64,000 bases of DNA from Adineta vaga (lineage: Eukaryota; Animalia; Rotifera). The translations under genes were made by a program, and so were the position numbers. The notes under the pieces are model-generated. The model was not told the origin of the DNA. It worked only from the letters and a program-made list of their open reading frames with translations, and ran no database searches. Every line of letters begins with the position of its first letter. Position 1 is the stretch's first letter. The stretch is taken from NCBI GenBank assembly GCA_021613535.1, contig CP075496.1, positions 372,001 to 436,000 of the forward strand. Reading direction: 5' to 3'. Below are positions 1,113-61,240 of this stretch, one piece after another.

Positions 1113-1168
1113 CTATCTTCAGATTGGGTGTGGGTGTCGTTATTCTCTTCACCCACACCCAAATAATC
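1113..1168. repeat. Telomere-like palindromic boundary element, site A
   Basis: ctatcttcaga-TTGGGTGTGGGTG-tcgttattctctt-CACCCACACCCAA; perfect 13-bp stem. Confidence 0.85.
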
Positions 1169-1571
1169 GTTTAACTCAACTTGAAGGTTTAACAAAAGTT
1201 TATTCCTTATCACTTTATAAAAATTAATTCATTGAAATTCCAATTCTGACAACAACTGAAGCAATTCGTCGACTTGATATGAATTACAATCCAGTAAACA
1301 CATTTCTTATGCTCTATTTTTCAAGAATATAACAGAAATCAGAATTTCTCAATCGAAAATCCCCGTTATTCCTTCACACATAGGTCTACTTGAAAAACTC
1401 TCATTTTTGGATTTATCTCATATACAAATAACTCGTGTACCAAGAAGTCTCTTGAATTTACCTTATCTTCAATATTTGGCTGTTCAAAATAATCCAATTT
1501 CTAAAGAAGAAGTTGATTCATTTAAAACAGATTTAATCAATCGACAATCAAAGATTAATTTACTCATCTAA
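1162..1571 (+). pseudogene. 5'-truncated leucine-rich-repeat gene fragment (not in ORF track)
   Basis: Manual translation: NNRLTQLEGLTKVYSLSLYKN*FIEIPILTTTEAIRRLDMNYNP, frameshift, then FKNITEIRISQSKIPVIPSHIGLLEKLSFLDLSHIQITRVPRSLLNLPYLQYLAVQNNPI...LLI*. One in-frame stop and one frameshift. Confidence 0.75.
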
Positions 1572-1690
1572 TTTATTTTTTATTTTTTTATTCATTTTAT
1601 AATGAGAATATCAATAAAAGTTCATTGATTAAACGTCTGTTTCTAAATCTGAAAAGATTAACACTACAGAGACAAATTACAAAATGAATA

Positions 1691-1753
1691 GAGTGTGGAT
1701 GTCATTATTCTCTTTGTCCATACCGCCACCACCCACACCCACACCCTCAACAT
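1691..1753. repeat. Telomere-like palindromic boundary element, site B
   Basis: gagtgtggatgtcattattctcttt...acccacacccacaccctcaacat; loop nearly identical to site A. Confidence 0.8.
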
Positions 1754-1862
1754 TTTTTCAAATAATGTATTATTACTTTGATATTGTTGTTTATTTACTT
1801 ATTATTTCATGTTATGGCTTGACAAAATAAAACAAGTAACGCTCATCCTTTGGATTCGCCGA

Positions 1863-3228
1863 CCCTATTCTGAAAGAATGATAAGAGCGCCCATTAAAGC
1901 CCTCAAGCTGGGCCTAGACTTGACCGGATCCCGGTCCAAGCAAACTTTTTACATAAAAGCTTTTCAAAAGTGCTCTTCATCTTTTCACCATTTCAAAGTA
2001 TCATTAAATCATTTATCAAAAGAGAAAAGCAAAAAAAAGTACTGTTTGTAAATATTTATGGATCTGACCGCTTGATACTTCTTAAAAATGCATTACCCGT
2101 ATTTATTTGCCTTTCTAGAAGGCTCATAAACAAACGTCTAATCGCCAACGCGCGCAGTCTATTTTCTATATTCCTTTCAATCGTATGAGTATAGTGTGAG
2201 AGATTCGCTCATCATAGTAGATCAATGCACAACCAAAGACTTAGAAAATTTGCATGATCGCGTCGTTTCTAGTGTAGATTTCATTCTCTTTTTCATTTTC
2301 TAAGGAAACAGAACTTTGTCGGTTCCGTTTTCGTAGATCATCAAGTAAGTGACTTCGAAGAAACGTACAAAGCACATGAAAGTCATTCAAATCCATATTC
2401 TGAAGTATCGCTCTCTAAGTCCACGCCTAGTCATTCGTCGGCCTCCCTCCGCCACTGTAAAAAATAAACGTAGAATACAGAACCCTTCAAAAGGGTTTAT
2501 TAGTTACTAATGCCCTATCATAAACCCTTTCATCAACCTTTCCAGCTAATCAACCCTATGAAGGGTATTTTATACGTTGCACTTTCTTGCACTTTTAGGG
2601 TATATGAGTACTGATTAAATCATCAAGGGTTTATGAACCCGATAAACCCTTTGTAAATCCGTTCAATAATGTACCCTTCTGAAGTAAATGACGAATAGAA
2701 AACGCTTTTCTGTATCAAAGTGCAACGTATAAAATACCCTTCATAGGATTGATTAGCTGGAAGGGTTTTGTATTCTACGTTTATTTTTACAGTGCGGTTG
2801 GCCACTTACGACTAGCCGTTAACATGAACGCCTTCATTGTTTCGTCTACTTTTGATTCACTTGCAAAACGAATAACTGAATTTCCTTTGGTCTTCTCTGC
2901 AAAAGGCACTGACGTTGTATTACTATAAAGGATTCGAGTTCCTCGACCTCGATTACCTTTTGCTAATCGATTTCTTATAATCATTCTTAAGTTTTCATTG
3001 ATTGATAGATTGCTGAAATCTGATTGGATTAAAGCATCCATCCTCTCTAATGCTGCAATCCTATTGGTTAAAACCGGCATTTCAAATAACCCTTAATGGT
3101 CGAAACCCCGATCCAAAATAACCTCGCTGAATCAAGCTATCAAGTCAAGAAGTGTGATTGGCTTGGACAAACAAACAAACTTTAACGATTTTTAACGAGC
3201 CTATAACCCTTTCTTTCAGAAAAGGGAA
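1863..3228. mobile_element. Non-autonomous repeat element, same family as 30575-31128
   Basis: 2010-2210 aligns with 30575-30805. Both copies contain gattcgag(t/a)tcctcgac and end in ataaccc(c/t)tttctttcagaaaagggaa. ccctattctgaaagaa at 1863 is an imperfect inverse of the right end. Confidence 0.55.
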
Positions 3229-4550
3229 TGAACAAACGACTAGAAATTATCGACTTTGTTAGTAATGCAGCATCTGCACCACAAAACGAACAACTATCAT
3301 GTATGCTAACCAGAGCTCCGCGGGACAACTAAAAACTCGTCCCGTTCCGCTTCATTTTAAGCTTTCTTCTTCAATCTAGATAATTTATTTTAACACTTAA
3401 GTATTTTAAAGTACCACGGCCATAACAAAAAATGTATTTTTATCACAAAAAATTCCGTGCTCCATAAGAAGTATAAGTTTGAATACTGCTCATCGAGTTA
3501 CTGATCTGACAAAAAGCATGTTGTTGAGATTTTCGGGATTGGTTGAAGATCGACGCTCGCTCATAACGAGCCCACCACTACTAAACTCACGTTCAACTGA
3601 CGTTGTTGTTGCAGGAATGCAATGAATCATTCGTGCCAATTTGGATAATAACGGTAAATTGTTGTGGTTTGCCTTCCAGAATATTAAAGGATTGTCGACG
3701 AGCAGCTCAGAATCTATAAAGATTGATAAGTATTTGTCAACTTCATCATATTCTGATTCTTCATATTCTTGACCAAATCTTTTTTTCTTAAGAGGTGGCT
3801 CACCTTTTTCATTTCGTTGAATTAACCGCTCTGATTCTCGATTATGCAACAAACGTTTTAGTTTTTCGAGTTCAGCTACTTCTTTCAACTGTCTTCGCAC
3901 ATAACTTTTGCAAGAATCAATTTGAGCAGTGGAATATTTGCGAAGATATCTGTATCTTGGATGAAGAAATGCTGCTGCAAAATGGATGGGCTCCAAGATA
4001 AACATAGACTCCAATAGTTCAAGTAAACGAAGACGAAAGAATCGAATGCCTGAAAGCAAAAAATTGTTTAGTTTCAGTTTTTATACAAGTATTCATTCAG
4101 TATATTAACACTAAACTTACCATTCGTCTCCTCGGATTCTATATCATATTCATTATCATCGCCTTCTCTTCTTTTCCTTGAGAAACTGTCATAATCATCG
4201 TTTTCTCTGTTGAAATAGACTATATTTTCGAACGAACTTAATACTTTACGTAAAGTCATAACACAAATAAGAATTAAATACAAAGATGATTCATTTCCTT
4301 TTTGTACGATGGTTATAATATGCTTGAATGGACGTAATAAATAGATAAGACGTTTAATAATTAATTGATCAATTAAAAATGGTTTTTTCTTCTCCTGTAA
4401 AATCTTTTTTGTTTCTTTAAAAGATAGTAGCTGCCTAATTCGACTTATAATATAAATGGATTTTCATTAATATATATCTATACATCTATAAACAGATATA
4501 GATATAGATATATACATACCTCACCCATGTTAGTTTACGAATATAGGAAT

Positions 4551-4600
4551 AGGGTGGGTGTTAGTATTACATCTATCTAACACCCACACCCTCAAAATGG
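4551..4600. repeat. Telomere-like palindromic boundary element, site C
   Basis: aGGGTGGGTGTTAG-tattacatctat-CTAACACCCACACCCTCAAAATGG. Confidence 0.85.
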
Positions 4601-5168
4601 TATTAGCGGTCAAATCAATGGTAAGATTATTGACTGAATTAGTAACAAATGTATCAATTATTTTCTTATCTGAATTAGATTTTGAGTTGGCGATTGGTTT
4701 CTTTATGATTTTTATGCTAGAAATACAATTATACGTTGATGTGATGTTGGTTTGGTTAACAGTTGAATTTTGTTGGTTAAGAGACGTATTATCGTTAGAT
4801 TGATTAATAGGATTGAATGTTGATTTATGTTTAGACATTGCATTAATAAATGAATTAATCTTTGAATTACAATATCCACTTGAAGAGATATTTGGTAAAT
4901 TAATAATTGAATTATAAATACGTTTATTGACACGATTATTTGTTGGGTTACTGCTTGGTCGTTTGTTCAATTGATTGGTTAAATTAATGAAAGATTTATT
5001 ATTTGAGATTATCTTAGTTGAATCAATATTGGTATTTTTTGTCAAGGTTTTGTTAAATATGTTTGTTCAGTATCTGATTGGAAATATGACGAAACTTATT
5101 GCAAGTTGATCTGATTTTATTTGCATATTGCAATTGAATAGGTGTTAAATTATATTTTATTTCTTCTT

Positions 5169-5452: not shown

Positions 5453-6969
5453 AGGATCTTGTCTAAAAGATTTTCTTATTTTCTTGTAAATTATTTAATT
5501 TACTAAATAAATTATTACTTAATTAAATCATGTATTGATTTTTTTTAATTAATACTTGAATATTATTTAGATAATGAAATTAAAAGCCGCTGTAATCAGT
5601 ATCAAATTTATACTCAAATTGTTACCCATAAAGAAGTGTAATTCCAAAACAATTAAAGTAAGAAGAGAAAACAAAACTTACCACAATGATACTTTCAGCA
5701 CTTTTATCTTCTTCTACAAATGGAGAGCAACAAAGATCATACGATCGATATTCAAATTGATCATTAACGAATGTTGCAGCAACTACAAGATAAGAAACTT
5801 GATGGATAGGATCGCTCCATAAATCAGGACAAAATGTAACAGCATCACTCTCAAGACGTTCAATTAGTTATTTAGTAATACGAACACGATGTTGATCGGC
5901 AAGTTTAGCTATATGTGCAGCGGTTACATCAGCACCTCTAAACGCTTGATCAACATCAATATAACCACGACGAGCACATTAAAGAAAAGATTAAGCAGAA
6001 AATATTAGAATTTTAAGATCAAATACTTACCGATTGAAATACATTCTTGGATTAATCGCCGAAGACCTTGATCTTCAAGAACTGAAAATGCACGAATACT
6101 TTGACAAACCCATTCTGCTTGCAAATCCTTTATCTTCATAATTTCAGGTGCTTTTAAAATCGGTGATTGTGCTGCATAAAACGTGGTTAAACATCGTTGC
6201 GCCGAAGATGTTCCATTTGGTGCTAATCTTTTATTTCTGTCTTTTGAAACTTCGCAATCGTGTTGATTGGGTAATCTAGTACTGTTTGATACAAATGAAT
6301 ACGTTGAAAAACAGTTGCGATATGAAACAAATCCACCAATTCGTTCTGCATCACCATTATCATTGATAACAGAAGGAAATCCAAACAAATTCCAACGATT
6401 AGAAGTGCGTTTGCCTATATTTTCATTAATAATATATTCATTAGGTTTTGTTTTGAGCATGGATTGAATTTCAGCACAAGTGGCTTTATGCCAATTACCA
6501 GGAGAAGAGGGTGATGAATTAACCGATGTCACATGTGAATCACGAGGTTTCGCGTTTCTAACGCGCGATATGCAAACCGGTGACAATGACAAAATTTCAG
6601 GAGAAGACATAATGTTGTTTGTTTAATTGAATTACAAGTGTTACTTTGTGAAAATCAAAATACATTAAATAGACAGACAATGAAAAACGAAAAGTGTGAG
6701 TCGTGGGGCTGAGTCGCCGCCGGTTTTTGGGAAAAAATTACGGCCGCGGCCACCGCCGTGATAAAAATTTAAACATTCGACTTTCCAACATTTTCAGTAC
6801 TCTAAACTAACTTTTAGATTTCTCCTGACTTAATTGTATGAATCCTCGTCGCCGAAAAACATTTTTGCCTTGCAAGGTGCAGCAAAAGTGAGGGTAAGGA
6901 GAACAAATTCTTTCGGCAAAGACGAACACAACCGTCCTTGTGTTTGTTACTCTTGAACTTCCACAATAT

Positions 6970-7630: not shown

Positions 7631-8669
7631 TCATATTTTAGATAAGCAAATACAAAAACGAAAATTTGATCTTGGTAAGATGATGCAAAAAGAAACTGAA
7701 CAAAGCTGCGCTGATATCATTCTTTGTTAGTTTAATTCTGCTAGTGTTTGACAAATTGAAGGTACATGATACTTGTAGGATTTAAAGTAAGATTAACTGA
7801 AGGGTAGTACTACGCAGAATACTTCTTTGTTGAAAAAAAAAAGCAAGATTAATTTTTTTGCCCCGAAGGACCCACCACACTCTCTTCTCTCTAAATACGT
7901 ATAGATTTTTTCCAAAAACGACTGCATGAGTTTATATAGACGTATCGGAAAGATTTCTGACACTACCACCGTTTTTGTTGCAGTTTTCATATTTTTAGTG
8001 AGGTTTTGGATTGTGAAAAAAAAGGATTACGTTTTTAATGACCAGCGTGGAAGTAAAGACACTTTCATCATATCTGCGACTTATGTGTACAGATTTCGAA
8101 GATCAATAGCATTTTCTCAGAACATCATTTTTGAATATTAGAATTGGGATAATGTTCACTCTACTCAAAATGCATCCAATATTTTGGGCTCGGAAGATTC
8201 AAGTAAAGAAAAATGTTTCTCCGAACGGTCGTAGTATACTTAATCTTCAGGTCAGAAACACAAAATTCAGTAGCCCCGAGCGATAGTTTCAGTACTAATT
8301 TGAGGTAGTGATCATTAAAATATTTATAAAATATGCATGAATGAGCAACTGCAAATTCAGTTCGGAACATACTGAGACAGAGTTACCGTTTATTCAAAAC
8401 AAATTCAATCCTTGTAGAAAGGTTCCGCCTGAAGTTAGCACAGTGTCTCAAAACTCGATAGATTGGTACGGACACGGATTTGACAGGAAAAAACACGCTA
8501 AAACTTTTATCACAAGAGTTTTGCGGCGAACTATTTATCACTGAACATTTTTTAATGCCTCTCAAAGCTTTCACAGAAAACAGTATAGTTTTAGGTTTCA
8601 GTAAACTTCAGGTAATCGAACCAAAGGCGGTATCAGGGTCGTGCTGAACATAACATATATAATAAGCTA

Positions 8670-9148
8670 CACACTACAAAAATTGGTGCTCTACTGAACT
8701 TCTAAAAAGGGTTCCGTCCTTACAAAAAAGACTGCAAATACGTCCACGGTTTCGAAGACGGAATAAAAAATTCTACAAAACCATTAAAGGATCGTACCGT
8801 GTACCGAGAGAAAGAATCTTTTGCTACGAAACCTGTTTTTGACTTCAGGAAACCAGAAAAAGGTTTCGGAGGAAAATACGAAGGCTACAGCTTCAGATAA
8901 AAACCTAATGGTTCCTTACTAAACCTCAGTGTTCTTGTGGAGATAAATGCGAAACCTTTTTTTGGTGTCTTGAACTCAAAAACAGGTTTCGTAGCAAGAG
9001 ATTCTTTCTCTTGGCACACGGTACGATCCTTTAATGGTTTTGTAGAATTTTTTATTGCGTTTTCGAAACCGTGGACGTATTTGCAGTCTTTTTTGTAAGG
9101 ACGGAACCCTTTTTAGAAGTTCAGTAGAGCACCAATTTTTGTAGTGTG
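8670..9148. mobile_element. MITE with ~190-bp terminal inverted repeats, CACTA/EnSpm-like ends, TA on both flanks
   Basis: ta|CACACTACAAAAATTGGTGCTCTACTGAACTTC...GAAGTTCAGTAGAGCACCAATTTTTGTAGTGTG|ta. Confidence 0.9.
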
Positions 9149-9403
9149 TAAAGTATAGCCATACATCATGATGCTGGTTAAGGCTACTTTGAAGTTCTTC
9201 ATAAATGTGGAAAAATGAAACTCCTGGAAGCCAATATTATGCATTTAATTAATACAACGCTCGCGATTGGAGAAAGCACTAGTCGGCCGAAATGAGAACC
9301 ACCATTAGAATCATGAAAGTTTTATTTTTGAAAGCAAAACTCCGGAGAAGAAAATTTCGAAAAAAAAATTTAAACAGAAAAGGGTCTTTGATCACTTTCG
9401 AAT

Positions 9404-9470
9404 ATGGATGGTATTTGTGACTTCAGAGTAAAATGCACATCCGTTCATCACCCACACCCACCCTTACGCA
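9404..9470. repeat. Boundary element site D (right arm clear, left arm decayed)
   Basis: cacccacacccaccctt at 9449-9465, about 480 bp upstream of the NRPS-PKS start. Confidence 0.55.
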
Positions 9471-9943
9471 TATACGGATGAAAAAGTATTTTTTCAGTTT
9501 AAGTAATACAGTGATACGTATATTCAGCGAGAAGGATGCAAGAACTAAGTACTCTAATACTCATCTCCTACTTCACTGTACTTGATTCGTCCTTAATGAC
9601 ATTTCATCTGTGCCTCTATTTGCATTCTAATACTATTTAGTTTGCACTCTTATCCTCGGAGAACGGGTGAATATATGAAATATATCATCCTATTGCATTC
9701 TGTCCACGCAGTCTATCAATACTTATGTGACGCTTAACTATATATCAGTTGTATTCGGTTTTTACTCCCATCCATGTTCTGCTGCACTCTAAAATGTTTC
9801 TGAAGTAAAATGACTGTCACTTTTCCTCTTTTGTGAACATCCCTTCCTTTACTGTAGTAGAAAGGAACTTATTTGTGAAGAAAACCCGTAGGGCACATGA
9901 TATAAAGAATTTAGATGTTTGCAGATTAAAATAAAAGTGATTT

Positions 9944-12900
9944 ATGGATTCATTATCAAAGAACGTGATCGACTTATTCTTTCAAGTAGCATGTACCTGT
10001 CCACAAAAGGTAGCGCTTGAGCTCGACGATCAAATTTGGACGTATGGCGAGCTGTTATCGAATGTGACTTGTGTCGCTAGTCATCTTAAAATAGAAATGG
10101 GCCAGATTATCTTCCAATACGTGGAACGAAGTTTTGAGATGATATGCGGTGTTTTGAGTATTATGTGTAGTGGTGGTGTATACTGTGCACTAAATCCTGA
10201 GGAACCTGCTATGCGCACTTGTTCGTTAATTGATGAAATCAAAGGTCGATTTGTTCTGACACATCAGACCACACGTAACAGATTTCTAGAAGTAAATTAT
10301 CAGCAAACTGAAACTATGAATCTCACAGAGATTCTGTCTATGAATACTCGGGAAGATATCTTTGAGAAAGGTAATTTTTTTCATAAATAAATAAGCTAAC
10401 ACATGCACATTTCATTGAATAAATAGAGCTCAATATTGCAAGTGAAAATCCATGCTTTATTATTTGTACCTCTGATATTACCGGTAAACGAAAAGCTGTC
10501 CTGCATACTTACGGAAGCCTCTTTGCAAATCTACTAGTTCGGATTAATTGGGAAAATAAATATGGTGACAAAGTTCTTCAACTAGCTGAATCATCACGGA
10601 TCGTTCACTTGATGGAAATCTTCTTAGCGTTGACATCAAAATCAGCAGGTACACTTGTGCTTTTGCAACCCGGCAATAACTTGAATATGGATCGTCTTTA
10701 TACGACTTTCAAAGAAAAACAAATCACCGTTGTTTGGACAGCCTCATCGATGCTTGAATTAATGATTGACAATATAGAATTGACTAATAAAGAAGACAAC
10801 GATACGCTGAAAACTGTTCGCCTTCTTTGTATGGAAGGAGAGCCTCCTAAAGCGCATTATCTGATCAAAGTGAATTTATTTATGCCACGAGTACGTATAT
10901 TCATAATATACGGATTAAGTGAAGGTATGACTGTCACTGGCTATTATTTTGAACGTGATAAAAATGGATTCACTGATATTTCAAACACTTTGCCAATCGG
11001 TCGTGCACAACCGGGTTATGAATGCTTACTTATCAATAGTGATAATCATCAAATTATTTCTCCATTATGCATAGATGTTATCGGTGAAATACACGTTGGA
11101 GGTAATAGTTTAGATTAGAAAAATAAGAAAATGTTTCATAATTTTTTTTTTGAAAATTCATAGGTCCTGGTCTTTTCCAGTGTTATTACAATAATCCTGA
11201 GTTGACTAGTAGAACACAAGTAACAATTGATAATAAGCGTTTTTTTAGAACGGGCGATTTGGGTCAATATAACGCAAGAGGAGAGCTTGTACATATGGGT
11301 CGTATCGACACCCAGATTAAAATCTATGGAAAAAGAGTGGAAGCAGCTGAAATTGAAATGACAATTTTGGATTGGTCACCAAACGATATTTCTGCTTGTC
11401 TGATCGTCAAGTTTTCTGAAAATGACAAAGATTCAGTTGTTGCCTACATAATATCCGATAATTCACAGCTTAATACTGAATCATTACGAAAGCATTGTAG
11501 CGAGCGGCTCCCTCAATATATGGTACCATCTTATTTTATTATTCTAAAAAGCTTTCCATTAAATGGAAACGAAAAAATAGACAGAAGTCAACTACCATCA
11601 CCATTGATATTCAGTCATATGCCATTTCAACGAATTCAAAATGATGAAGAGCAAATACATCCTTTGCAGTGTCCTTTATTTGTTCAAAATACTATTTCGC
11701 GTCCTACCAACTACTTTTCTTCAAGTGGTATTACTAATCATGCAGAACCACTAAATCAGCCGTCGTCTCCATCTTCTCAGTCTTCTACACCACAGTCGGT
11801 TGTTGCTCATGATTCTACTATTCCTGCTCGATGGGCAGCATGCGTATCGCAATTTCATTCACAGTCTGCTTTACTCTTCAAACAACAATCATTCACCTAT
11901 GCACAATTAGATGATGCATCAAAACGAATTGCAAATCATCTTCAAAAACACTCTGAAATACCGCTTGGACTTGGAATTCGCATTGGTATAGTACTACAGC
12001 GTCGTCCACTTTATATAGCAACATTGTTAGCATGCTTGAAATGTGAATGTATTTTTATACCTATTGATCCATCCTTTCCTCCTGCACGTGTTGCCGACAT
12101 GCTCATGTATATACGACCTCATGTTCTGATAGTGGATGACTATAATATAAAACATCGTATTAAAATTAGTCTCGCTAAAGCTATTGATTCAGCAAGAACA
12201 ACCAAAGTACCCAGTACACATGATACTGAGAACGCTGAGATGAAACCAGAACAAGAAGGTGAGCAAGATGCTGACGAAACAACAATCACAGTCGATGGTG
12301 ATAGACCACAAGTGATTGTAATGGAAGATTGGCAAAATATTGATGCTTTGTTCGATCTGAAAGATGATACAACACAAAATAATTATCACAATGAAGAAGT
12401 TGTATTACAACCTGTTATATCACTATCAGAATCACGACGTTTGAAACTTAGAGAGCGTTCTCCTTCATCTTCGTGTCGTTCTGAAATTTCTTCAACTTCT
12501 ATCACTAACAACGACAGTGTCATTTCCTCTGCCCCTGTTTTTTCTTCTTCTTCTCTTGCTTACTTATTATGTACTTCGGGTACTACAGGTGGTATTAAAG
12601 CTGTACGTCTTTCTCATGGCCATGTAACACGTTATGCCTATGCGTATCATTCGACACTTGGTCTACGTGCCGGTGATATCTTTGCGCTGTCAGCTTCATT
12701 TTCTTTTATTGGACATATGAAACAATTATGGGCATCATTATTGAATGGTTTAACAGTAGCATTGCTTGTAGAGGAAGAACAAGCATCGACACTTGCTTTA
12801 GTTCGTGCTTTGCAACGTTATAAAGTCACTGTGTTAGACTTGGTGCCACCTCGTCTCAAAGAATTAGTGCATGATTGGGCCTTATTACCAAAAGATTCTG

Positions 12901-15900
12901 TCAATTCATTGCGCATGTTAATTTTAAGTGGAGATGCCTTACCCACACAATTAGTACGTCAATTTAAGCAAGCTTTAGCACGTCCTGTTCAGCTGTGGAA
13001 TTGTTATGGTCAAACTGAAAGTTGTGGAACAACAATAGCGTATCATGTGCAAGATGAAGATTTAAATCTCGATACACCTTCTTTTTCCGGAGATCATCTA
13101 CGATCACCCGGTGCTGCCAATTTCTCAACTTCTTCCGCTATTCTACAACGGGCACTTGTCCCTATTGGTTATCCGCTACCTGGTACGACTTTATATATTA
13201 TAGATCCGAATAATACTACACCTACTATCACTCCAGAAGGTGAACCAGGTGAATTAGCGATTGCGGGTGCCCAAGTTTCATTTGGTTATTGGAATTCCGA
13301 GAAAAATAGACATTGTCATGATGCTGAAACACGTGCCTTCGTGGTGGATCCATTCGGTACACTCATGTCCTTCACAGGAAAACTATTACGTACCAATGAT
13401 TTATGTACACGTACACCAGATGGTTGTATCACTTTATTGGGACGAAAGGATAATATTTTAAAAATACGTGGTATACGTGTACATCCATCCGATATCGAAA
13501 ATGCACTCTTACAACATCGTTACGTAAGTGAAGCAGTTGTATCGATGTTATCGTTAGATTTAGGACAAAATACAGATGAAGTTTTGGTGGCTCATATTAC
13601 ATTACAACCTCAAATATCTTTTTCTGAACATGACACATCCAATACTTATTCTGTAGCTGATAAACGTTTAGAAGATGATTTACGTATGCATTGTAAAAAT
13701 TTGTTACCAACAGCATTAGTACCTTCGTTTTTTATTATCCATCATAATTTCAAACTTCCCAGAACAACCACAGGAAAATTAGATCGCAAACTCAACTCTT
13801 ATATGCTTGAAGCGAGTACTTTAGCTCAGTTTTCAGATAGAAATAAACTGTCAAGCGCAAATGCAACTCGTTTTGGTCCAAACTCACCATCACCTATGTC
13901 GTCATCCTTACGTATTGCGTCTCTGCTATCACGTGATACAGCGGATATAGGTTCATCATCTATGATTAAACAAGATAGGCAATCATTCAATGCATATTCT
14001 GGTACCAATGACTTGCAATCACCATATGCACGTACAACATCTTCACAACTTGTTACTGATTCAACTTTATCACCACTCCCATCTTCACCGGAAATAACAA
14101 TCTCTCATACTATGACTTCACTTACAGCTTCCACAACTTCTTTGATTGACTCTCCACGTACACTTTTGCTTGTTTTTGGTCCAATGGAGGCTCCTACTTT
14201 TACCTTACCACTTTGTATTTTAACATCTGCTGATTCAGATCATCTTCCTTTACGTATTGATCCAGTTCTTATAAACCAACTTAAACTCAATTTGCCCTCC
14301 GCACCATCATCACCAACATCTTCTTCTTCACCGATTACACTCGAACGTGTAGCTGCCCTTGTTTCGGATCGTTTTTTTAAACATTTAAATGTCTCGGAAG
14401 ATACACTTGCCTTTGTTTTTGACGAATATAGTGAAGAGCAATTTCAGCTATCCGCGAGTTCAGTGGATTTTTTCAGTTGTGGAGGTCATAGTTTATTAGC
14501 AAGTGGTTTGAATTTACGTATTTATGCGGATATCGGTGTAACAGTGACAGTTAAGGATATTTTTGAATGTTCAACATTAGAAAAAATTGTAGCGAAAACA
14601 TGGGAATATGTCAAAGAAGAAAATGGCGAACTAGAAACCACTACCACTATTCCTGCAACGAATACAACCTCAACAACAACAACGACTAATAGCGATACAA
14701 AAAAAAATTCGTCCGTAGCTTCATCGTCGTCGTCTTATCGTCCACCGTTGATTTCGATTTCTCGTTCTTCATCTTCCGCATTTCCTCTTTCCAATACGCA
14801 ATTACGTATGTATTTTGCAGAGCGTATGCAATCCAATTCTTCTTCAGGTTTGCTCAATACAATACGTGTCTTTCGACTTTCATCGACTTCGATCACGGCG
14901 ATATTGAGAATTAAAGCTTTACGTTTAGCTGTTAAATTACTGTTAGAACGACATGAAATTTTACGTGTTTCATTTCAAACCGATTCTTCGACAGGATCGA
15001 TTGTTCAAGTTCCGCTAGTCTGTCCATTACCTGACGATCTTATCGAACACGTTGTACAGAATGCTGATTTCAGTGGTTATGACTATGAAAACGCCATGAT
15101 GCAAACAGAGTATGCTATTGATTCGATGTTAGTGACACCATTCGACTTATCGACTGCTCCGTTGATACGAATACGTGTATGGAAATTACCACCTAGATCA
15201 TCGTCGACTGGCAGGATGCCCTCCTATATTTTAGCAACTTGTATTCATCATATGATTACCGATGGTTGGTCTTCCACCTTATTTTTTCAAGAACTTTCTA
15301 CTTTTTATCGTTCGATCCTCTCAAAAAATGAACCATCTGCCCTCTCATCGGTTCCGTATCAATTCGCCGATTATGTATCTTGGCAGAATTCTTTCTTGTC
15401 ATCTTCTCTGCTAGCTGTAAAACAATTAAATTTTTGGACACAAGAACTAGCAAATTTGTCCCCATTAAAATTACCTACCGATTTTCCACGTCCAGAAATC
15501 CCTACGTATAATGGTTCTGTTCATCGATTTGTGCTACCAGGCTCATTAGTGGCTTCCCTACATACTCTTGCAACACAGGAGCGTAGTTCCTTATTTTCAC
15601 TCTTAATGTCAACTTTTCAGCTCATGCTATCACGATTTGCATCGGGTCAAACTGATATATGTTGTGGAACCATCTTAGCGAATCGACCAGTAAAAGGTAC
15701 AGAACGTATGTTAGGTTGTTTTATTAATACGGTACCTATCCGTACACAAGTCAATCCATTGCTAACATTTCCACAACTTTTAAGAACGGTTTCCAAAAGT
15801 GTATTACAGGCGTTAGATAAACAAGATGTTCCCTTTGAAAAAATTGTAGACGCCATACAGAAAAACGAACCCGAGACTCGAGATCTGTCTCGTCATCCAT

Positions 15901-23750: not shown

Positions 23751-23852
23751 TTGAGAAGGGTGTGGATGTCCATGACTCATATATAAAGCTAACAGAGGAT
23801 TAGGACGTGGCTGACATATAGATATCCATACCCACACCCACCCTTCAAGATA
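23751..23852. repeat. Telomere-like palindromic boundary element, site E
   Basis: ttgagaagggtgtggatgtc...atatccatacccacacccacccttcaagata. Confidence 0.8.
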
Positions 23853-24519
23853 TTCTTCTTCTTTGCAAATGTAATGCTTTAAGAATATATAGAAGAATAA
23901 ACAATAATCTTCAAATTTATATATTATGTCAATCATGAAAACAAGATAAAAAAAGGAGAAAACAGATTACAACGAGTTAAACAACAAGTAGAGAAATAAC
24001 AGCAAAATAAGCCGAAGGTATGGTGATACTAAAGTAAATCATCACAACACCGAGAATAATTATAGTAAATGAAATAGAGAAGAGAGAACGTTCAAAGTGA
24101 TACAAGACGGAGCAGTTCTTTCAAAAGTGTTTTTAAATTGATAATAATAATTGAATCGTCGACAAGCAGTTCTGATAATATTGCCTTTCTCGAATGAAAA
24201 TTTACACATTAAGATATGTTATGTATTGGATTAGAAAGAAAAATCAACTAAAACAATACAGGTAATATTTTCTGTGTTATTCGTTTTACCCTTAACTTAA
24301 TATGAGGATATGAGCGCTAATAAGAATGGAGTCTCCTCTTCATCTACATCCTTACTCACATTTTCATCGAACAAATACAACTCATTTAATGCTAGAGTCT
24401 ACTGTACAGACGAATACCATAACTAGGTGTATAGATTTCTTTAATTTAGTTGAAGAAATAATTCAAACTTACCAACAAATATATTTCAACTGCTAGAGTA
24501 AATTCGACATTTCTATATT

Positions 24520-33408: not shown

Positions 33409-33505
33409 TGAAGGTGTGGATGGGGGTATAATGTAGGTGAGGGTGTGAGGGCGAAAGTAGTATATTTGCATCCTCATCTCACGCTCACCCACACCCACAC
33501 CCTAT
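33409..33505. repeat. Telomere-like palindromic boundary element, site G
   Basis: tgaaggtgtggatggggg...gtgagggtgtgagggcg...cctcatctcacgctcacccacacccacaccctatt. Confidence 0.8.
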
Positions 33506-35119: not shown

Positions 35120-35178
35120 ATAGGGTGTGGGTGTGGGTATATCTTCTTCACTCATATCTACACCCATCCTCAAGATGG
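35120..35178. repeat. Telomere-like palindromic boundary element, site H
   Basis: atagggtgtgggtgtgggtatatcttcttcactcatatctacacccatcctcaagatgg. Confidence 0.85.
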
Positions 35179-39336: not shown

Positions 39337-39551
39337 CTATTTTGAGAGGATGGATAGGTGTGGATTACAGTGCTCTTTTTATTTACGAATTCTTCGATTG
39401 TGAATGCGCAACAAACGTATTTCTCAACTAGTTCACAATAGTTTCGTATTTAAACTGAATAAAAAGACGTCAACAAAAGTTCATCGGGTGGGTGAGGGTA
39501 AATGCTGTATTTGTGAGTATGCTCGTTTAACTCACCCACATCCTCAAGATG
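39337..39551. repeat. Boundary element site I (39486-39551) plus upstream half-site (39337-39364)
   Basis: gggtgggtgagggtaaa...tttaactcacccacatcctcaagatg; half-site ctattttgagaggatggataggtgtgg. Confidence 0.8.
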
Positions 39552-43497: not shown

Positions 43498-43553
43498 TTC
43501 TGAAAATAAGATGAAAGAAAAATCTTTTTAATAAAAGATCTTCCTGATCAAAA

Positions 43554-43599
43554 CTATCTTCAGGGTGTGAGTATATTTCCTTCACTCACCATCAAGATA
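43554..43599. repeat. Telomere-like palindromic boundary element, site J
   Basis: cTATCTTcAgggtGTGAGT-atatttccttc-ACTCACcaTcAAGATA. Confidence 0.8.
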
Positions 43600-44077
43600 A
43601 TAGAGGAATTTCTCTCTATCTCTCTCTCTCTCTTTGGAAATAAAGTTAAGTTCATCTTATAAAAAGAGCTGACAATCTAAAATTAAAAAACTAATTGAAT
43701 GAATATCATCAATGGGTACTATCATCTGTTTACATGTAAAAAATTGATATGGTCTCCAATTTCCATTGTATTTTGTTTCGTCTCTTATTTCACGATCTGA
43801 AATCTATAAATATGCTGTCTGTCGTCCTATGTAGAAATCGATTACTGATTCAATACAGAAGATAAATCATCATCAATCTTCTGTTCCAATTAAAGAGATG
43901 TGCGGCGCGTTTGGTACGATGTCAATCGTATTGTTACTTATCTTCTTAATTGTAGCATTGTTATTTGAGTCTTTGTTGTCTATTTTGTATTTCGCATTCA
44001 TTTGAATATACTCTTTTGTTCGATAATTTGTAGGTACAAAAAAAAAATAAGAAGAAGAGTGAACAAAATCAAATTGT

Positions 44078-46250: not shown

Positions 46251-46303
46251 CATCTTGAGGGTGTGAGTAGAGAATTAATATTTACACCCACACCCTCAAA
46301 AAT
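46251..46303. repeat. Telomere-like palindromic boundary element, site K
   Basis: CATCTTGAGGGTGTGAGTA-gagaattaatattt-ACACCCACACCCTCAAAAAT. Confidence 0.9.
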
Positions 46304-46900: not shown

Positions 46901-47178
46901 GAGATACTAGCAATGCTACTTTCGTGTAGTGGTGAATCTTTTTTAGTTCATGTATTAAGATATTTCATTAAAAACTCTCATAAATCAATTATTTTCGTTT
47001 AATATTATCTTAAGGCATGGCTCATCTATTGAGTAAACATATGTGTTCACATAGATATTTACACAAACTCGAATACATGAAATAAAATACTTCGTATGCA
47101 AAAAAAGCTTTGATGAATGAGAATTTGAAACTGTTTATAATAAGACTTATTCGACTTGATGAAATTCGATTAGTAGAG

Positions 47179-47237
47179 AGAGTGGGTGTGGGTTTGGTAT
47201 CTTTATTGATAAATCCCACCTCCGTCCCACACCCTCA
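47179..47237. repeat. Telomere-like palindromic boundary element, site L
   Basis: agagtgggtgtgggtttggtatctttattgataaatcccacctccgtcccacaccctca. Confidence 0.8.
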
Positions 47238-47365
47238 TTTTTATATCGAATGAAAAGAAATAAACAATTTGAAATTAACTCTGCGAATAAAAGAATTGAA
47301 TATTTAATATTTTTAAAAACTAACAAAATCTGATAATAAATTGTATTTACAATAAAAAAGTTGAA

Positions 47366-48681: not shown

Positions 48682-49183
48682 TTTCTAAAACTAAACAAAA
48701 ATATAATCGGTTGAAAAGAACGTTTTTACGTTTTCTTACTGTAATTTAATGTAAAACAGGGTTGTCTTTCTCGTTCTGTTCGCTATTTCTGTATGCACTG
48801 CGACATATTTATAGTGATTCATCAAGAGGTTTGTCACGGAAAAAGTACATTGAGAAAAAGGTTGAACGAGAAAAGGACATTCAAAAATAGAGTTAAATAA
48901 ATAAGGAAACTTCGGATTTTATACGTGAGTTATGTGTACTGCAAAAAGTGTATAAGGTAGAAGATATAGGAAAATATCAGTATTTTTCTAATAACTCAAC
49001 AATGGCTCGTCCAACCAGGCTCATCTTCGAATTCGATTGAGATATTGAATAAACGGCCAGACATACTGGCCGATTTTAATAGTGTATTCACTTTTTGAGT
49101 ACACTATAAATATATCCAATTGTACAAGATTTAGAATTCAGCAATAATATAATCTGTACATTTGTTTTTTCAAACTTATTTGT

Positions 49184-50693: not shown

Positions 50694-50980
50694 GTGCGTT
50701 CTAAGACCATTATTAATATTAAGACTCATTCTTATGAATATTCACATAACTCACAAGAATTTAGTCTCATTTGGTTAGATGACAAAATCACTCCTGACAA
50801 TGTTGATAACTATCGTCGGATTAAAAAATTTCAATCTATCACCCAGAAAATCGATATATTCAATAGTTTTAATGTGTGTATGAAATTTGTCAAAAATATC
50901 CAAAACGAAAATATTATCTTTATTGTTGCTGGTCATTTTGCTCAAAAAGCTTTGGATATAATTCACACATTCGAAACCAT
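50694..50980 (+). pseudogene. N-terminal fragment of a bdelloid ART/TPR-type protein, truncated at site M
   Basis: FSLIWLDDKI...IDIFNSFNVCMKFVKNIQNENIIFIVAGHFAQKALDIIH, then runs directly into element-derived TILRVWVWVR*. Confidence 0.6.
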
Positions 50981-51047
50981 CTTGAGGGTGTGGGTGTGGG
51001 TACGGTAGAACTCAATAAAGATATTTCACGCCCACCCTTCCTAGATA
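50977..51047. repeat. Telomere-like palindromic boundary element, site M
   Basis: CCATCTTGAGGGTGTGGGTGTGGG-tacggtagaactcaataaagatattt-cacgcccacccttcctagata. Confidence 0.9.
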
Positions 51048-51149
51048 CTAATATAATAACTAATGTAAGCATATGAGTAGAGTTTTATTGGATTGAGATA
51101 AGCAAAGAAAAGTATAATGCATGAAGAACTAGATTATTAATTGTTGGGT

Positions 51150-52315: not shown

Positions 52316-52370
52316 TACACGAGGGTGTAGGTGTGAGTATATCTTGTCTATCATACGTAGATTACAAGAA
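52316..52370. repeat. Boundary element site N (right arm decayed)
   Basis: gagggtgtaggtgtgagtatatcttgtctatcatacgtagattacaaga; loop resembles sites H and J. Confidence 0.6.
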
Positions 52371-52403
52371 AATTGTGACAACGAAGAAAGCATAGCTATG
52401 GTT

Positions 52404-58149: not shown

Positions 58150-58257
58150 ATGATGAAAGAGGTATCGGGAAATTCGAAAGATCATACGATCAATCCTATC
58201 GATTGCTACCGGCATTTTATCACTAATGAGATTATTAGTCACTTGGTTCGTGAAACC
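58150..58257 (+). pseudogene. Short piggyBac-like transposase fragment truncated at site O
   Basis: NPIDCYRHFITNEIISHLVRET resembles the PGBD motif P.D.F..F.T.EII..IV.ETN.YA and is cut after ET. Confidence 0.5.
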
Positions 58258-58303
58258 ATCTTGAGGATAGGTGTATTCTTCTATCCTATACCCACACCCA
58301 CCC
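58256..58303. repeat. Telomere-like palindromic boundary element, site O
   Basis: CCATCTTGAGGATAGGTGTA-ttcttc-TATCCTATACCCACACCCACCC. Confidence 0.85.
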
Positions 58304-58862
58304 TTTTAATTTTTTTTCTTAATAAATTTAATTCCTGTTTGTATGAATTATCATTCTTTTTTTTCAATCAATCATAAGAGAAATATGTTTATTCATTATA
58401 CAGTCGAATCATTAAAAAAAATAGAATTGTTTTTCTATAACATAGAAATTAATGAAAGTTATTTAACGGTAAACTGCAAAATTTTGACGATATGTGATCT
58501 TTGTTATACGTCGCTTTGAAGAAAATGTAATTATAAAGGATTATCTTCAGTTTGAATAATACGTTCTCAATCTAAAGAAAAAGAAAAGAAGCTATGTTAT
58601 CATTCTGGAAGCTTCTTTAATTTGTATGCAAAGTCTTTAACTGTGATAATTTAAAATAGTTTCTCTGGAATCTTTTGTTCATACATGATTTAATTTGATA
58701 AATGAGTTTCTTTAGTAAGGTGTTAATCATCATTCTATAGGAGAATGCTTTTTTTTCTTTATATCTTATTATTAATTATAATTGTTTCGCTTGACTATCT
58801 GACTCTATTTATTCACTGAACATTCTTTTTCAGATATATAAATAAAAGTTGAAAAGGTTTTT

Positions 58863-59462
58863 ATGACTGAGGACATATTAATACTTTTGTGGGTCATTCT
58901 TGGTGTAATAGGATTTTTTGGTAATTGTCTTACAATATTATTTTCTTCGTATCGATCGAAAATCTATTGGAAATTTATATTGGGAGGTTCACTCATTGAT
59001 TTTCTCAATATTTCATTACTTTTAATTTCATTATTGTGTAACTATATTTGGTACAGATTCGAATATCATTTTTATATTCGGTATGCATTTCAAGTGACTT
59101 TCATAGTTCTACCATATATATGTAATAATTGTGTATTAATGGCTTATATTTATGAATTGGTACTTACTAGTAATCCTGAATCACTCCTAGGGAAGCTAAA
59201 AGAATGGCAAACGGTGCGGTGGACAATTTTTTTCATTTTGTATTGTATAGCGCCTGTTGCGTGTATTATACTTGTCTTGATACTTTATGATCCTACGGCT
59301 GAAAGTACAATAATAGAAATCTTATTTTCATTATTGTTTGGTGTTCTTCCATTTGCACTTACGGCCCTAGTAGTTTCACTCTCTTATCGAAATATTTACC
59401 GAAGACGCCAAAGAGCTGTAAATATATCACTGTTATTCACAATTTATACAAACAGCATGTGA
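58863..59462 (+). CDS. Partial GPCR-like multi-TM ORF (about 5 TM), possibly the 5' part of the Kelch gene
   Basis: GVIGFFGNCLTIL (TM1-like), LFGVLPFALTAL (TM5-like), ends at RRRQRA|gt. Confidence 0.55.
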   Translation: MTEDILILLWVILGVIGFFGNCLTILFSSYRSKIYWKFILGGSLIDFLNISLLLISLLCNYIWYRFEYHFYIRYAFQVTFIVLPYICNNCVLMAYIYELVLTSNPESLLGKLKEWQTVRWTIFFILYCIAPVACIILVLILYDPTAESTIIEILFSLLFGVLPFALTALVVSLSYRNIYRRRQRAVNISLLFTIYTNSM

Positions 59463-60103
59463 TTTCTGAACAATTTTATAATATAAATATTTTTGTTCTT
59501 CTCTCACAATAAATAGCGTCATTCTATGAAAATATTAAATACAATTTGTTTTGTATTAACAAATAGCAACAAATGCCACCACTACAACCAATATAATTCC
59601 AACTATAACTGCAGTTACAGACACAACAACAGCAACAACAACAACTACAATCTCACTACAACTACTGCTCAGCCAAGAAGTAAGCTATTAAGATTTGAAA
59701 TTCATCGTTTGACTTTCATTAAAATTCAATGAGATTAAGAAAAGTCTAAAAGAAAATGTATAAATAGATTTATTGTTAATTTGAAAAGATCAATGACGTC
59801 AGTTTATTATATAAATCGAAGGTTCTGAATATTTCTTTTTCTTCTTCTTCTTTGTCTATAAAATTTAATTTGAAATTAATCCTTTTCGAACAGATCATTT
59901 TAGAAGTAAATACTCAAAAGAAAACAATAACTGTTTGAATGAGTAAAATGAAAAGAAACAAATCATGAACATTTGTACGCTTTTAGATTATTATTATTTT
60001 CACTGCGAAATTTATACAGTAAAAAATTAGAATATGAATCCTATCTGTCACATTCTCGCATCCTCTTTTGAAACATTATAATAATGTAGTTGTTTCTATT
60101 TAG

Positions 60104-61107
60104 AATGGTATCTAACCGGTAATCTTGGTATATATGTAGCAGAACATGCAGCATCCATATTAATAGATGGAACAATTATGACTACTGGCGGATATACTGA
60201 TAAAGGTGTAACGAATAGCGTTTATCTATATAATGTATCAACGAAAACGTGGAATAATACAAATAATATGAAACAATCACGATATGAACATACAGCATCT
60301 ACCTTACTAAATGGGAGAGTCTTAGTTACTGGTGGAAGGCTTTCAAGTTATGATCATGATAGTGATATCCTGGATACTGCTGAATTGTATGATCCAATAA
60401 CCAAAAAATGGTCATTGATTGATAGTATGAATTATAAGCGATATAATCACAGAGAAACTCTTTTAACAAATGGAAAAGTATTAATTACTGGTGGAGCTAG
60501 TAAAAGTTATGATTCAGCTATTCTGAATACTACAGAATTATATGATCCATCAATAGACATTTGGGTCGCCACAGGTAGTATGAAAAGTGCACGAAGGAAC
60601 CACGCAGCATGTCTTTTAAAAAATGGAAAGGTATTGGTGGCTGGCGGTTCTCGAGCTAGTGCTGAATTATATGATCCAGCAACAGGACAATGGACACTAA
60701 CGGGTAGCATGCAGTCTTCAAGAGAATATCATACAATGTCTTTGTTACCAGATGGACAAGTACTAGTTACGGGTGGTAATTATCAATATAGTCTAAATAG
60801 TGCTGAATTATACGATCCAGTAACAGGAAATTGGTCCTATACTGACAGTATGCATTATGCCCGAACGAAACATACAGCAACTATATTACAGAATGGAAAT
60901 GTATTAGTTGCAGGTGGATATAATACGACTGCTACAAATAGAGTTGAGATTTATGATTCATCGACAAGAAAATGGACAACAATTTATGAAAGAATGAATG
61001 GTGAACGATACTCACATACAGCATCCTTACTACCAAATGGAGAAGTGTTAGTTGTTGGTGGTCAAAATTCTAATAATCAGTATTGGAATTCTGCAGAATT
61101 CTATTAA
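60104..61107 (+). CDS. Kelch-repeat beta-propeller, last exon (Thr-rich exon at ~59566-59679 upstream)
   Basis: Acceptor at 60103; ~7 repeats of R..HTA.LL.NG.VLV.GG...AELYDP..G.W. Confidence 0.9.
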
Positions 61108-61188
61108 TTATTAAAAATAAATAAAGAGTTTGAACGACTTTAAAATCATAATTTTCTAGTACCGACAGAGGTATTCGACGATGTCAAA

Positions 61189-61240
61189 GATGTGCGTGGG
61201 TGTGGATACAATATCGAGCTAACACCCACACCCACACCCT
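61189..61240. repeat. Telomere-like palindromic boundary element, site P
   Basis: gatgtgcgtgggtgtgg-atacaatatcgagctaa-cacccacacccacaccct. Confidence 0.85.

Follow-up and report, generated by a model that had tools for sequence, protein, structure and literature searches.

What are the telomere-like palindromes that separate neighbouring genes in a 64,000-nt stretch of the Adineta vaga genome (the window, meaning the whole stretch analysed), and how did they come to lie there? Bdelloid rotifers carry the highest known load of foreign genes among animals and have very fluid chromosome ends, and the joining of segments at these ends is not understood at the sequence level. A sequence-only reading of the window had listed 15 imperfect palindromes and proposed that they are integron-like sites at which genes are joined and shuffled. 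Telomere-type sequence was found at all 15 coordinates. Thirteen are head-to-head pairs, in which a G-rich arm of the type GGGTGTGGG is followed after 10-60 nt by a C-rich arm of the type CCCACACCC, while at 9404 and 52316 the supposed palindrome comes down to one recognisable arm. The sites are listed here by window position, and none is assigned to a strand:

1113..1168, no strand: head-to-head hairpin with a left degenerate clamp, CTATCTTCA; MFE -24.6, z -7.2; matches the strict genome pattern given below
1691..1755, no strand: hairpin; G arm weak, C arm strong and accompanied by TCAACAT; its loop family is common with 1113
4551..4603, no strand: hairpin of loop family 'GTTAG..CTAAC'; right arm with 1 mismatch to the 20-mer given below; the 3' end of a ~200-nt repeated unit (~4471-4600) that is also found at L061:5580-5752
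9404..9465, no strand: single C-rich arm (9449-9462) with the NRPS-PKS gene downstream; the G arm is not convincing
23751..23853, no strand: long-loop hairpin, ~300 nt past the NRPS-PKS stop codon (23453)
33409..33502, no strand: hairpin, ~90 nt past the stop of the NHL-repeat gene (33316); MFE -41.5, z -5.2
35120..35178, no strand: hairpin of loop family 'GTGAAGAAGATATAC', reversed; right clamp TCAAGATGG intact
39486..39551, no strand: hairpin with the BTB-TLDc gene downstream; right arm with 2 mismatches to the 20-mer
43554..43603, no strand: hairpin, 57 nt past the LCCL gene stop; inside contigs from RNA-like runs
46251..46303, no strand: hairpin, ~260 nt past the end of the I4U23_017247 transcript; the contig of one run departs from the reference at 46302
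47179..47237, no strand: hairpin, ~30 nt past the poly(A) site at which the minus-strand sulfotransferase gene ends (47268, placed by the T10 loose end of a contig)
50977..51050, no strand: hairpin; left 20-mer perfect, right arm degenerate; the end of the NmrA-like gene block is ~13 nt away
52316..52345, no strand: single G-rich arm at the large GPCR-like gene, just past its 3' end (ORF end 52404)
58256..58307, no strand: hairpin between divergent genes; left clamp CCATCTTGA intact, G arm degenerate
61189..61245, no strand: hairpin, 82 nt past the Kelch gene stop (61107)

Predicted hairpin energies of the 13 paired sites are 2 to 7 SD lower than those of mononucleotide shuffles. Within the window a 19-mer allowed up to 3 mismatches was matched 6 times, with 0.01 matches expected. 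Genome-wide, the strict pattern GGGTGTGGGT-N5-35-ACCCACACCC has 621 matches per strand, compared with 3 for the reversed (C-then-G) pattern, and the exact 20-mer CCATCTTGAGGGTGTGGGTG occurs 89 times in the genome against 0 occurrences of a control. These three comparisons exclude chance. The same polarity was evident across 264 kb, where 35 sites have the G arm before the C arm and 3 have the opposite order. Because this polarity is nearly exclusive, each segment between sites resembles a linear molecule with correctly oriented telomere tails. Extrapolated from the window and a 200-kb sample, the genome likely holds a few thousand copies.

The telomere-like character ascribed to the arms was borne out at the left end of contig C4, which is a (CCCACA)n array with CCCTCA variants. 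Both units of this terminal array are contained in the hairpin arms, and the repeat of the arms is thus that of the terminal array, as healed ends would have it. Enrichment near chromosome ends, likewise expected of healed ends and suggested earlier as a check, was also found: 73 of the 89 20-mer arms (82%) lie within 3 Mb of a contig end, a zone that makes up 36% of the genome (p 4e-19). Sites are rare in the chromosome cores, where genes are packed just as tightly.

Conserved outer ends and a variable loop had been described for the palindromes, and both descriptions need correcting. The 9-nt outer clamp, allowing up to 2 mismatches, was found on 17% of arms in an unselected sample against a background of 0.13%, and TGA stands immediately 5' of the tract in 33% of unselected arms. 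The clamp CCATCTTGA is restricted to a subset of arms, and no template was identified for the 9-nt clamp on this 17%. The loops, for their part, form a set of copied, recurrent families. A 17-mer loop core is present in 24 exact copies, each in a hairpin context, and the families have a fixed junction with one arm and a variable junction with the other. The two arms of a site are independent of each other. At loci picked for one perfect 20-mer arm the opposite arm had a median of 7 mismatches out of 20, arm quality was uncorrelated in 35 unselected pairs (Spearman rho 0.07, p 0.70), and a site's own arms folded no better than chimeric arms swapped between sites (MFE -28.1 vs -27.7, p 0.61), with no covariation or compensatory change between the arms of a site. 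Arm length ranges from ~10 to 600 nt, is usually only 10-25 nt, and is asymmetric in places, such as at L011, where a G tract of ~600 nt lies opposite a C tract of ~140 nt. Many copies are badly decayed. The reported lack of target-site duplications was confirmed in 14 of the 16 copies with both clamps intact; among these 16, an 8-mer direct repeat resembling ATTTTTTC was noted at two loci. Solo tails are also present, followed by the antisense 3' ends of small repeats or retroelements, and solo G tracts elsewhere adjoin elements that by eye are of the Athena/Terminon kind.

The genes of the window are of the types previously named (NRPS-PKS, NHL, LCCL, NmrA and receptors, here GPCRs), together with Kelch, BTB-TLDc, a sulfotransferase, DUF1232 and a hAT transposase fragment. 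As had been stated, they occupy both strands and retain introns, for example at the GT..AG joint 44337/44632, and an intron was found in gene I4U23_017247, which also has a separate transcript end and, upstream, a 400-nt region kept in A. ricciae. With rough gene models, at least one site was found in ~12 of the ~15 intergenic intervals of the window, which agrees with the observation that one copy separates most neighbouring genes. The further statement that no copy lies inside an intact exon is largely upheld, only 3 of 61 sites in 264 kb being inside ORFs of at least 150 codons, with the qualification that hairpin 43554-43603 is probably within a 3' UTR, since contigs from RNA-like runs include it (for the window these runs are contigs whose RNA label is only a guess). 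Across the 264 kb, sites lie at a median of 507 nt from 3' neighbours and 959 nt from 5' neighbours, and their shares among the intergenic classes follow background proportions, divergent gene pairs included. A Pfam scan of 20 of the window's 24 ORFs of at least 110 aa (the large NRPS-PKS ORF was left out) gave no recombinase, and a hAT dimerisation fragment was the only mobile-element match. No HUH gene was present among the long ORFs of the window and no reverse-transcriptase ORF among those scanned, so the search proposed for a linked recombinase or HUH nuclease came back empty there. Hammerheads gave no Rfam match in the window, even with E up to 10, and none was seen by eye at the hairpins.

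Three recent duplications start or stop exactly at a hairpin. L010 and L046 have no resemblance up to the G arm and 99.6% identity from there on; between L016:9639 and its 94% copy, only the hairpin and the right flank are shared; and the L006 duplicate (95-97% identity) ends at 7017, within a G arm, and has a 561-nt extra segment that starts at the hairpin edge 4770. Small repeats also have the tracts as boundaries. The comparison with sister species that had been suggested gave concordant results. A block conserved in A. ricciae starts at the right edge of hairpin 43554, and an NmrA-like block conserved with an Adineta-like environmental contig ends ~13 nt from hairpin 50977, so that both blocks stop within ~15 nt of a hairpin, past which the neighbouring genes differ. 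At hairpin 43554, A. ricciae has kept the variant clamp CTATCTTCA and unrelated sequence replaces the arms; this clamp without arms could be a target site or the result of later loss. A palindrome considered as a possible 'empty' target proved to be ordinary coding sequence. Compared with its paralogues, the window contains another intervening segment, and this one bears a hairpin. Older paralogues (70-78% identity) mostly do not have the hairpin at the matching place, which makes hairpin presence unstable and its history unreadable. Only ~10 recent duplication boundaries were examined, and this sample is biased because most loci were picked for carrying the 20-mer; within it, sites are located at rearrangement and synteny breakpoints, as healed ends should be. 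The sequence-only reading was to be abandoned if copies were spread evenly, if orthologous empty sites pointed to simple insertion, or if breakpoints were not enriched at the sites, and the duplication ends, cross-species block ends and end enrichment go against such outcomes. These results support the view that the sites act as seams, with segments of roughly gene size moving independently on either side. To that extent the proposal of gene-shuffling joining sites stands, separately from the integron analogy as its mechanism, which is not supported.

The explanation that we tentatively favour is that the sites are quite possibly scars of telomere-capped ends that were joined via a short copied bridge and that later offered homology for break-induced copying. 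A free DNA end would receive a short telomere-type tail, its G strand running 5' to 3' towards the end, and this tail would be one arm. Such tails would often begin with TGA-GGGTGT and in a subset with the longer start CCATCTTGA, and the capping may be the work of telomerase or of an Athena-type reverse transcriptase. Two capped ends would then be joined head to head. Because two G-rich tails are unable to pair, we infer a joint across a short templated bridge consisting of the 'loop' and the inner arm; simple end joining would be insufficient in view of the recurrent loop families. The bridge might be copied off an existing hairpin via strand invasion, or its template might be a small RNA of retroelement type that has a C-rich 3' tail; the copying would convert one G tail into a C tail able to pair with the other end. 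We also infer re-use of the arms, in that an existing arm would be homology for newly capped broken ends, which could invade and copy onward as in break-induced replication and thereby duplicate or relocate the adjoining gene-sized segment. As selection would spare only intergenic joints, genes would end up with joints between them. A solo tail followed by an antisense retroelement 3' end corresponds to the published attachment of Athena/Terminon elements to G overhangs (PMC3846280, PMC5072296), and in A. vaga lines telomeric repeats and Athena fragments have been found at deletion breakpoints, along with one break-induced homologous repair (PMC13564844). The explanation draws on the observed polarity, arm independence, lack of target-site duplications, loop families, subtelomeric enrichment and breakpoints at the sites; capping, bridge and re-use are proposed steps. 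Counting against it are the 9-nt clamp for which no template was identified, the clamp kept without arms in A. ricciae, and the older paralogues that mostly have no hairpin.

Somewhat unlikely, in our estimation, is that each site is a small non-autonomous element (a foldback MITE or 'hairpin SINE') copied whole from masters. It would enter intact intergenic DNA through an unknown enzyme, or through an endonuclease-free reverse transcriptase that acts at nicks or breaks, and the clustering of breakpoints at copies would merely reflect the fragility of palindromes and the dispersed homology that they offer. Such an element would suit the conserved loop cores at many unrelated loci, the number of perfect 20-mer arms, the loop family that is the 3' end of a ~200-nt repeated unit, the 8-nt direct repeat at two loci and the segment by which the window differs from its paralogues. 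However, a target-site duplication of fixed length is missing from most intact copies, the two arms of one copy are unequal in quality and age where terminal inverted repeats should have been born together, and arm lengths are far from uniform. Nor was a longer coding element with the same ends seen at the 89 20-mer positions or in the 264 kb; plus and minus 20-mers a few kb apart belong to separate hairpins, and the two cross-species comparisons yielded no collinear empty site. It is distinctly unlikely that the sites are selected cis-elements, that is, paired sites for a telomere-repeat-binding protein that act as insulator, heterochromatin boundary or roadblock terminator, although they do lie just past gene 3' ends (one 30 nt past a poly(A) site, several 57-93 nt past stop codons), nearer to 3' than to 5' neighbours, and at about one per intergenic interval in the window. 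A need to keep promoters intact would by itself produce a 3' bias, every intergenic class is represented at its background proportion, and the sites are often absent from paralogues and orthologues, lack compensatory change between arms, are in many cases badly decayed, and are rare in equally gene-dense chromosome cores.

That the palindromes are attC-type sites, at which a dedicated site-specific recombinase excises and inserts gene cassettes, is highly improbable. Like integron attC sites they are imperfect palindromes with conserved outer parts between gene units, one between most genes, and rearrangement boundaries fall on them. However, the scanned ORFs of the window include neither an integrase nor a HUH gene, and where an integron would have co-oriented, promoterless cassettes, the genes here face both ways and have promoters, introns and poly(A) sites of their own. 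The arms consist of telomere repeats whose length is arbitrary and whose quality varies independently; they show no structural covariation and pair no better than swapped arms, and duplicates have the whole hairpin in common and differ at its outer edge, with no fixed internal crossover point. Taken together, the loop families, the clamp on 17% of arms, the independence of the arms and the lack of target-site duplications and of a recombinase make both an integron and an ordinary inverted-repeat transposon a misfit.

Descriptions of bdelloid interstitial repeats and of Athena/Terminon elements are reportedly to be found in Gladyshev and Arkhipova 2007 and Arkhipova et al. 2017. According to published work (PMC3846280, PMC2861651, PMC5072296, PMC8494291), bdelloid subtelomeres contain (TGTGGG)n interstitial repeats with Athena/Terminon additions, short tracts between genes are read as healed ends, and the model is one of head-to-tail chains with all repeats in one orientation. 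The joined ends proposed here resemble these subtelomeres in the (TGTGGG)n motif, in the subtelomeric, transposon- and foreign-gene-rich setting and in G tracts followed by antisense retroelement 3' ends. Unlike the chains, the tracts here stand head to head across 10-60 nt, their loops form families and a subset has the 9-nt clamp; the polarity of 621 to 3 is not that of a head-to-tail arrangement, and a hammerhead-adjacent C-rich tail with a reverse-transcriptase ORF was not found in the window (ORFs scanned, Rfam). No description of the paired head-to-head form was found in the literature searched, two key papers being outside that search. In telomere fusion junctions, too, a G-strand array passes directly into a C-strand array, and each arm has a length and a degree of decay of its own. 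One such head-to-head junction is the human 2q13 ancestral fusion site. Fusion junctions are, however, known as one copy, whereas the sites here likely number in the thousands (extrapolated from samples), usually with arms of 10-25 nt, a copied spacer and gene-scale spacing. Bacterial REP/BIME sequences are high-copy short intergenic palindromes, often just after gene 3' ends and without target-site duplications, all of which applies to the present sites as well. The present sites differ in their eukaryotic host, in arms made of the host's own telomere repeat and in their near-confinement to chromosome ends, and a RAYT-type HUH transposase was not seen. Ciliate TBE/Tel-1 transposons bear telomere repeats with the C strand outermost on the element, and ciliates have breakage and elimination motifs with de novo telomere addition. 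The likeness is in telomere repeats that bound DNA segments and in telomeres added on both sides of internal breaks, yet here the segments that look capped are those between sites. Programmed elimination is not known to occur in bdelloids.

A broader version of the joined-end explanation, which we regard as unlikely, is that telomere-capped linear fragments of gene size are the material from which bdelloid chromosome ends are assembled and reshuffled. Any free end, own or foreign, would receive a short templated telomere tail, capped ends would be stitched head to head via a copied bridge, and the hairpins would be re-used for break-induced copying. The outcome would be a gene-cassette system that works with telomeres and without a recombinase, and it would account for the installation of foreign genes. 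Head-to-head tail joints at gene boundaries would record past break, cap and join events at single-gene resolution. If the breakpoint association holds genome-wide, the joints would be a direct marker with which to date and map rearrangements, and they would provide a testable mechanism for gene shuffling without meiosis-type exchange as well as a concrete hypothesis for the installation of foreign DNA. A use of telomere addition for internal repair would, moreover, be unusual.

Telomere-type sequence is present at all 15 window positions proposed as palindromic sites in the sequence-only reading, so the sites are real. Thirteen of them are hairpins, head-to-head pairs in which a G-rich arm is followed after 10–60 nt by a C-rich arm, while sites 9404 and 52316 (named by their start in the window) have one arm only. 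The predicted stem-loops of the 13 paired sites are 2–7 standard deviations more stable than shuffles. Across the assembly, a strict two-arm pattern has 621 matches per strand versus 3 for the reversed pattern of opposite polarity. The exact 20-mer of a perfect arm, CCATCTTGAGGGTGTGGGTG, has 89 copies spread over all six contigs, with a control giving 0. Subtelomeric enrichment was confirmed, with 73 of the 89 exact copies located within 3 Mb of a contig end, a zone that makes up 36% of the genome (p = 4e-19). Because the strict pattern recovers only one of the 15 window sites, and because 26 pairs were found in a further 200 kb of subtelomeric DNA, the true number of sites in the genome, extrapolated from these samples, is probably a few thousand. 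The window is C4:372001–436000 in the six-contig, 100.8-Mb assembly, and the chromosome end 0.37 Mb away has a (CCCACA)n array, interspersed with CCCTCA variants, at its tip. When the contig ends (L071–L082) were read, a telomeric array terminated only the left end of C4, the remaining 11 stopping in unique or coding sequence.

The arms and loops were analyzed separately. Arms can be as short as about 10 nt or as long as about 600 nt, and locus L011 pairs a tract of roughly 600 nt with one of about 140 nt. At 40 loci selected because one arm is perfect, the opposite arm has a median of 7 mismatches in 20 (best 2), and arm quality in 35 unselected pairs is uncorrelated (rho 0.07); the two arms of one site are independent. 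In a folding test the arms of a site paired no better with each other than with arms swapped between sites, and selection for structure was rejected. These arm tests contradict three readings of the sites: inverted repeats of equal age, snap-back synthesis and selection for structure. The loops are not free; families of them recur at unrelated loci. In one family, a 17-nt core was found in 24 exact copies, each with a G tract before it, and here the C-arm junction is fixed and the G-arm junction variable. The 9-nt outer clamp CCATCTTGA is a minority feature that flanks only 17% of 99 unselected arms (0.13% in background), and a bare TGA precedes the tract in 33% of the unselected sample. The reported lack of target-site duplications was upheld in 16 copies with both clamps intact, the exception being a ATTTTTTC-like 8-mer at two loci. 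As a candidate empty palindromic target, CATCTTGATCAAGATG (up to one mismatch) was found 31-fold above control, but its copies lie inside open reading frames of core genes and therefore reflect a coding-sequence effect unrelated to hairpins; short-spacer intermediates were nearly absent.

The window carries ordinary and foreign-type genes on both strands, among them NRPS-PKS, GPCR, NHL, BTB-TLDc, LCCL, sulfotransferase, NmrA-like, Kelch and DUF1232 genes and a hAT transposase remnant. Within 264 kb, intergenic regions of the tandem, convergent and divergent type carry hairpins in the same proportions as background, and long ORFs contain just 3 of 61 sites. Sites in the same 264 kb are closer to the 3' than to the 5' ends of neighbouring genes; a 3'-end-specific role was rejected, as the counts by intergenic class equal background. 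Contigs of four sequencing runs were aligned to 41500–47499 and are RNA-like by their size and skipped introns, the RNA label being only a guess. They define a GT..AG intron at 44338–44631 in the gene whose product, encoded at 44011–45829, is identical to I4U23_017247 of A. vaga. One transcript end falls at about 45988, 260 nt short of hairpin 46251, and a poly(A) tail at 47268, on the minus-strand sulfotransferase gene, ends 30 nt short of hairpin 47179–47237. Hairpin 43554–43603 is contained in such contigs, and one contig crosses hairpin 46251 and departs from the reference at 46302. Contigs of two runs also skip 300 nt with AT..AC ends inside the LCCL gene (42972–43273), which would be a minor-class intron or else a deletion allele.

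Within A. vaga, edges of recent duplications were found at the arms. To the right, starting with the G arm, loci L010 and L046 (24 kb apart) share 99.6% identity, and left of this arm they are unrelated. At L016:9639–9833 a 94% copy shares the hairpin and right flank and not the left flank. Locus L006 has a 95–97% copy on another chromosome, the right end of which (7017) falls within a G arm; this copy lacks a 561-nt segment that starts, in L006, at the outer edge of hairpin 4719–4772. Overall, in a sample biased by the choice of loci mostly for carrying the 20-mer, about 4 of about 10 recent-duplication boundaries lie at features making up about 4% of the sequence. Small repeats, too, have telomere-type tracts at their borders. 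In paralogues of 70–78% identity the hairpin is usually missing, and conservation at older paralogues, where it is mostly absent or decayed, was set aside as uninformative.

Other repeats were noted in the window. The hAT remnant block at 3337–4424 (Dimer_Tnp_hAT at 3490–4059, minus strand) and a block at 5647–6655 match C5:16.87 Mb and C3:19.84 Mb at 79–84%; where the window has an intervening 1.2 kb, hairpin 4551 included, both copies have 547 nt of unrelated sequence. Two neighbouring ORFs, each about 415 aa long and without a Pfam match (35906–36478 and 37377–37966), are tandem duplicates, 85% identical over about 590 nt, with no hairpin between them. A dispersed repeat of about 1.1 kb (1820–2962; dozens of copies, 76–91% identity) is broken at 2452–2794 by a nested element whose inverted arms measure 51 nt (2535–2585 and 2717–2767). 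A 155-nt repeat at 48894–49048 has copies on several chromosomes at 88–90% identity, and a large inverted repeat at 8668–9150, with 201-nt arms 96% complementary and 81 nt apart, has a 78% copy on C3.

Two blocks conserved across species were compared with the hairpins. In A. ricciae, the orthologue of I4U23_017247 matches the window over 43597–45988, including 400 nt upstream, and its conserved block thus begins at the right edge of hairpin 43554–43603. For the NmrA-like gene, the alignment with an Adineta-like environmental contig covers 51063–52180, ending 13 nt from hairpin 50977–51050. Neighbouring genes differ in both cases, and at the opposite ends of the blocks the hairpin is 136–260 nt farther out. 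At the position of hairpin 43554, A. ricciae has kept a variant clamp, CTATCTTCA, and not the arms. Samples of 20 kb contained few or no hairpins in A. ricciae and Rotaria and one in A. steineri. This scarcity, the paralogues of 70–78% identity without a hairpin and the A. ricciae clamp without arms count against simple inheritance. In A. ricciae (L069) the orthologue lies within a tandem duplication of about 4.4 kb (7677–12056 and 15810–20110, 92–96% identity) whose boundary is not at a telomere-type site. A metagenome scan with an 18-mer gave 49 matches, 46 of them chance matches in G+C-rich bacterial sequence and three in rotifer-like contigs.

About one-fifth of the perfect 20-mers are solo tails, one arm alone, and the antisense 3' end of a small repeat often lies directly beyond. 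One such repeat is SINE-like, discrete and about 180 nt long; its ends are fixed, it terminates in CACCCACACCC, and it is found at L061:5752–5931 (C1:556751–556930) and at least 40 other loci. In its clamp-bearing copies the terminal bases can pair into a 9-bp stem (CCATCTTTGA / TCAAGATGG) around the C-rich run. Solo tails also adjoin elements with a hammerhead-like CTGATGAG...GAAACGCGTC motif, recognized by eye and without an Rfam match. G tracts followed by antisense sequence, whose sense reading resembles a minimal hammerhead (CTGATGAG ... GAAAC GCGTC) beside a C-rich tail, as for Terminons, are located at:

L014:4052–4130, G tract then antisense hammerhead-like sequence, no Rfam match
L171:1841–2050, the same arrangement, no Rfam match
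L171:4802–4860, the same arrangement, no Rfam match

Rfam searches returned no hammerhead for either the 180-nt repeat or the Athena-like ends; the window has no Rfam match, whether at the gathering threshold or with E relaxed to 10, and no tRNAs. The arrangement at the solo tails, a G tail and then an antisense 3' end, is the one published for the attachment of Athena/Terminon elements to G overhangs (PMC3846280, PMC5072296).

The best fit, which we hold tentatively, is that a hairpin is the scar left where two DNA ends, each capped on its own, were joined head to head. Because the loops recur as families, such a joint would require a copied bridge, whether DNA templated by another hairpin or a small RNA that has a C-rich tail. 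That duplication boundaries fall at arms suggests that arms may serve again later, when capped broken ends engage in break-induced copying. For A. vaga, experimental work has reported both capping and break-induced repair (PMC13564844). That the sites are instead a mobile hairpin element which does no more than draw breakpoints is rather unlikely, and a selected cis-element is more doubtful still. The integron-like system of gene-cassette sites originally proposed is highly improbable: every feature tested came out against it, and no recombinase was found among the single exons and ORFs searched in the window.

Short telomeric tracts in bdelloid subtelomeres, enriched near transposons and NRPS/PKS genes, were already known (PMC7943196, PMC11258130, PMC2861651, PMC8494291). 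The literature searched, which excluded the 2007 Athena and 2017 Terminon papers, gives no account of the paired head-to-head form, the loop families, the clamp or the coincidence with duplication and synteny boundaries. Two origins of the clamp were rejected: as the usual beginning of true telomeres, since the sole contig end with a terminal array has a different junction, and as the terminus of the 180-nt repeat, since most copies end at CACCCACACCC without it. In a rotifer-like contig from a moss metagenome (L154; Ga0116226_10256679, 36% G+C), unique sequence is followed by CCATCTTGA and then by a telomeric array up to the contig end, and this may be a real neotelomere beginning with the clamp. 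If telomerase RNA or an Athena-family 3' end carried 5'-CACCCACACCC-UCAAGAUGG-3', the clamp would be templated.
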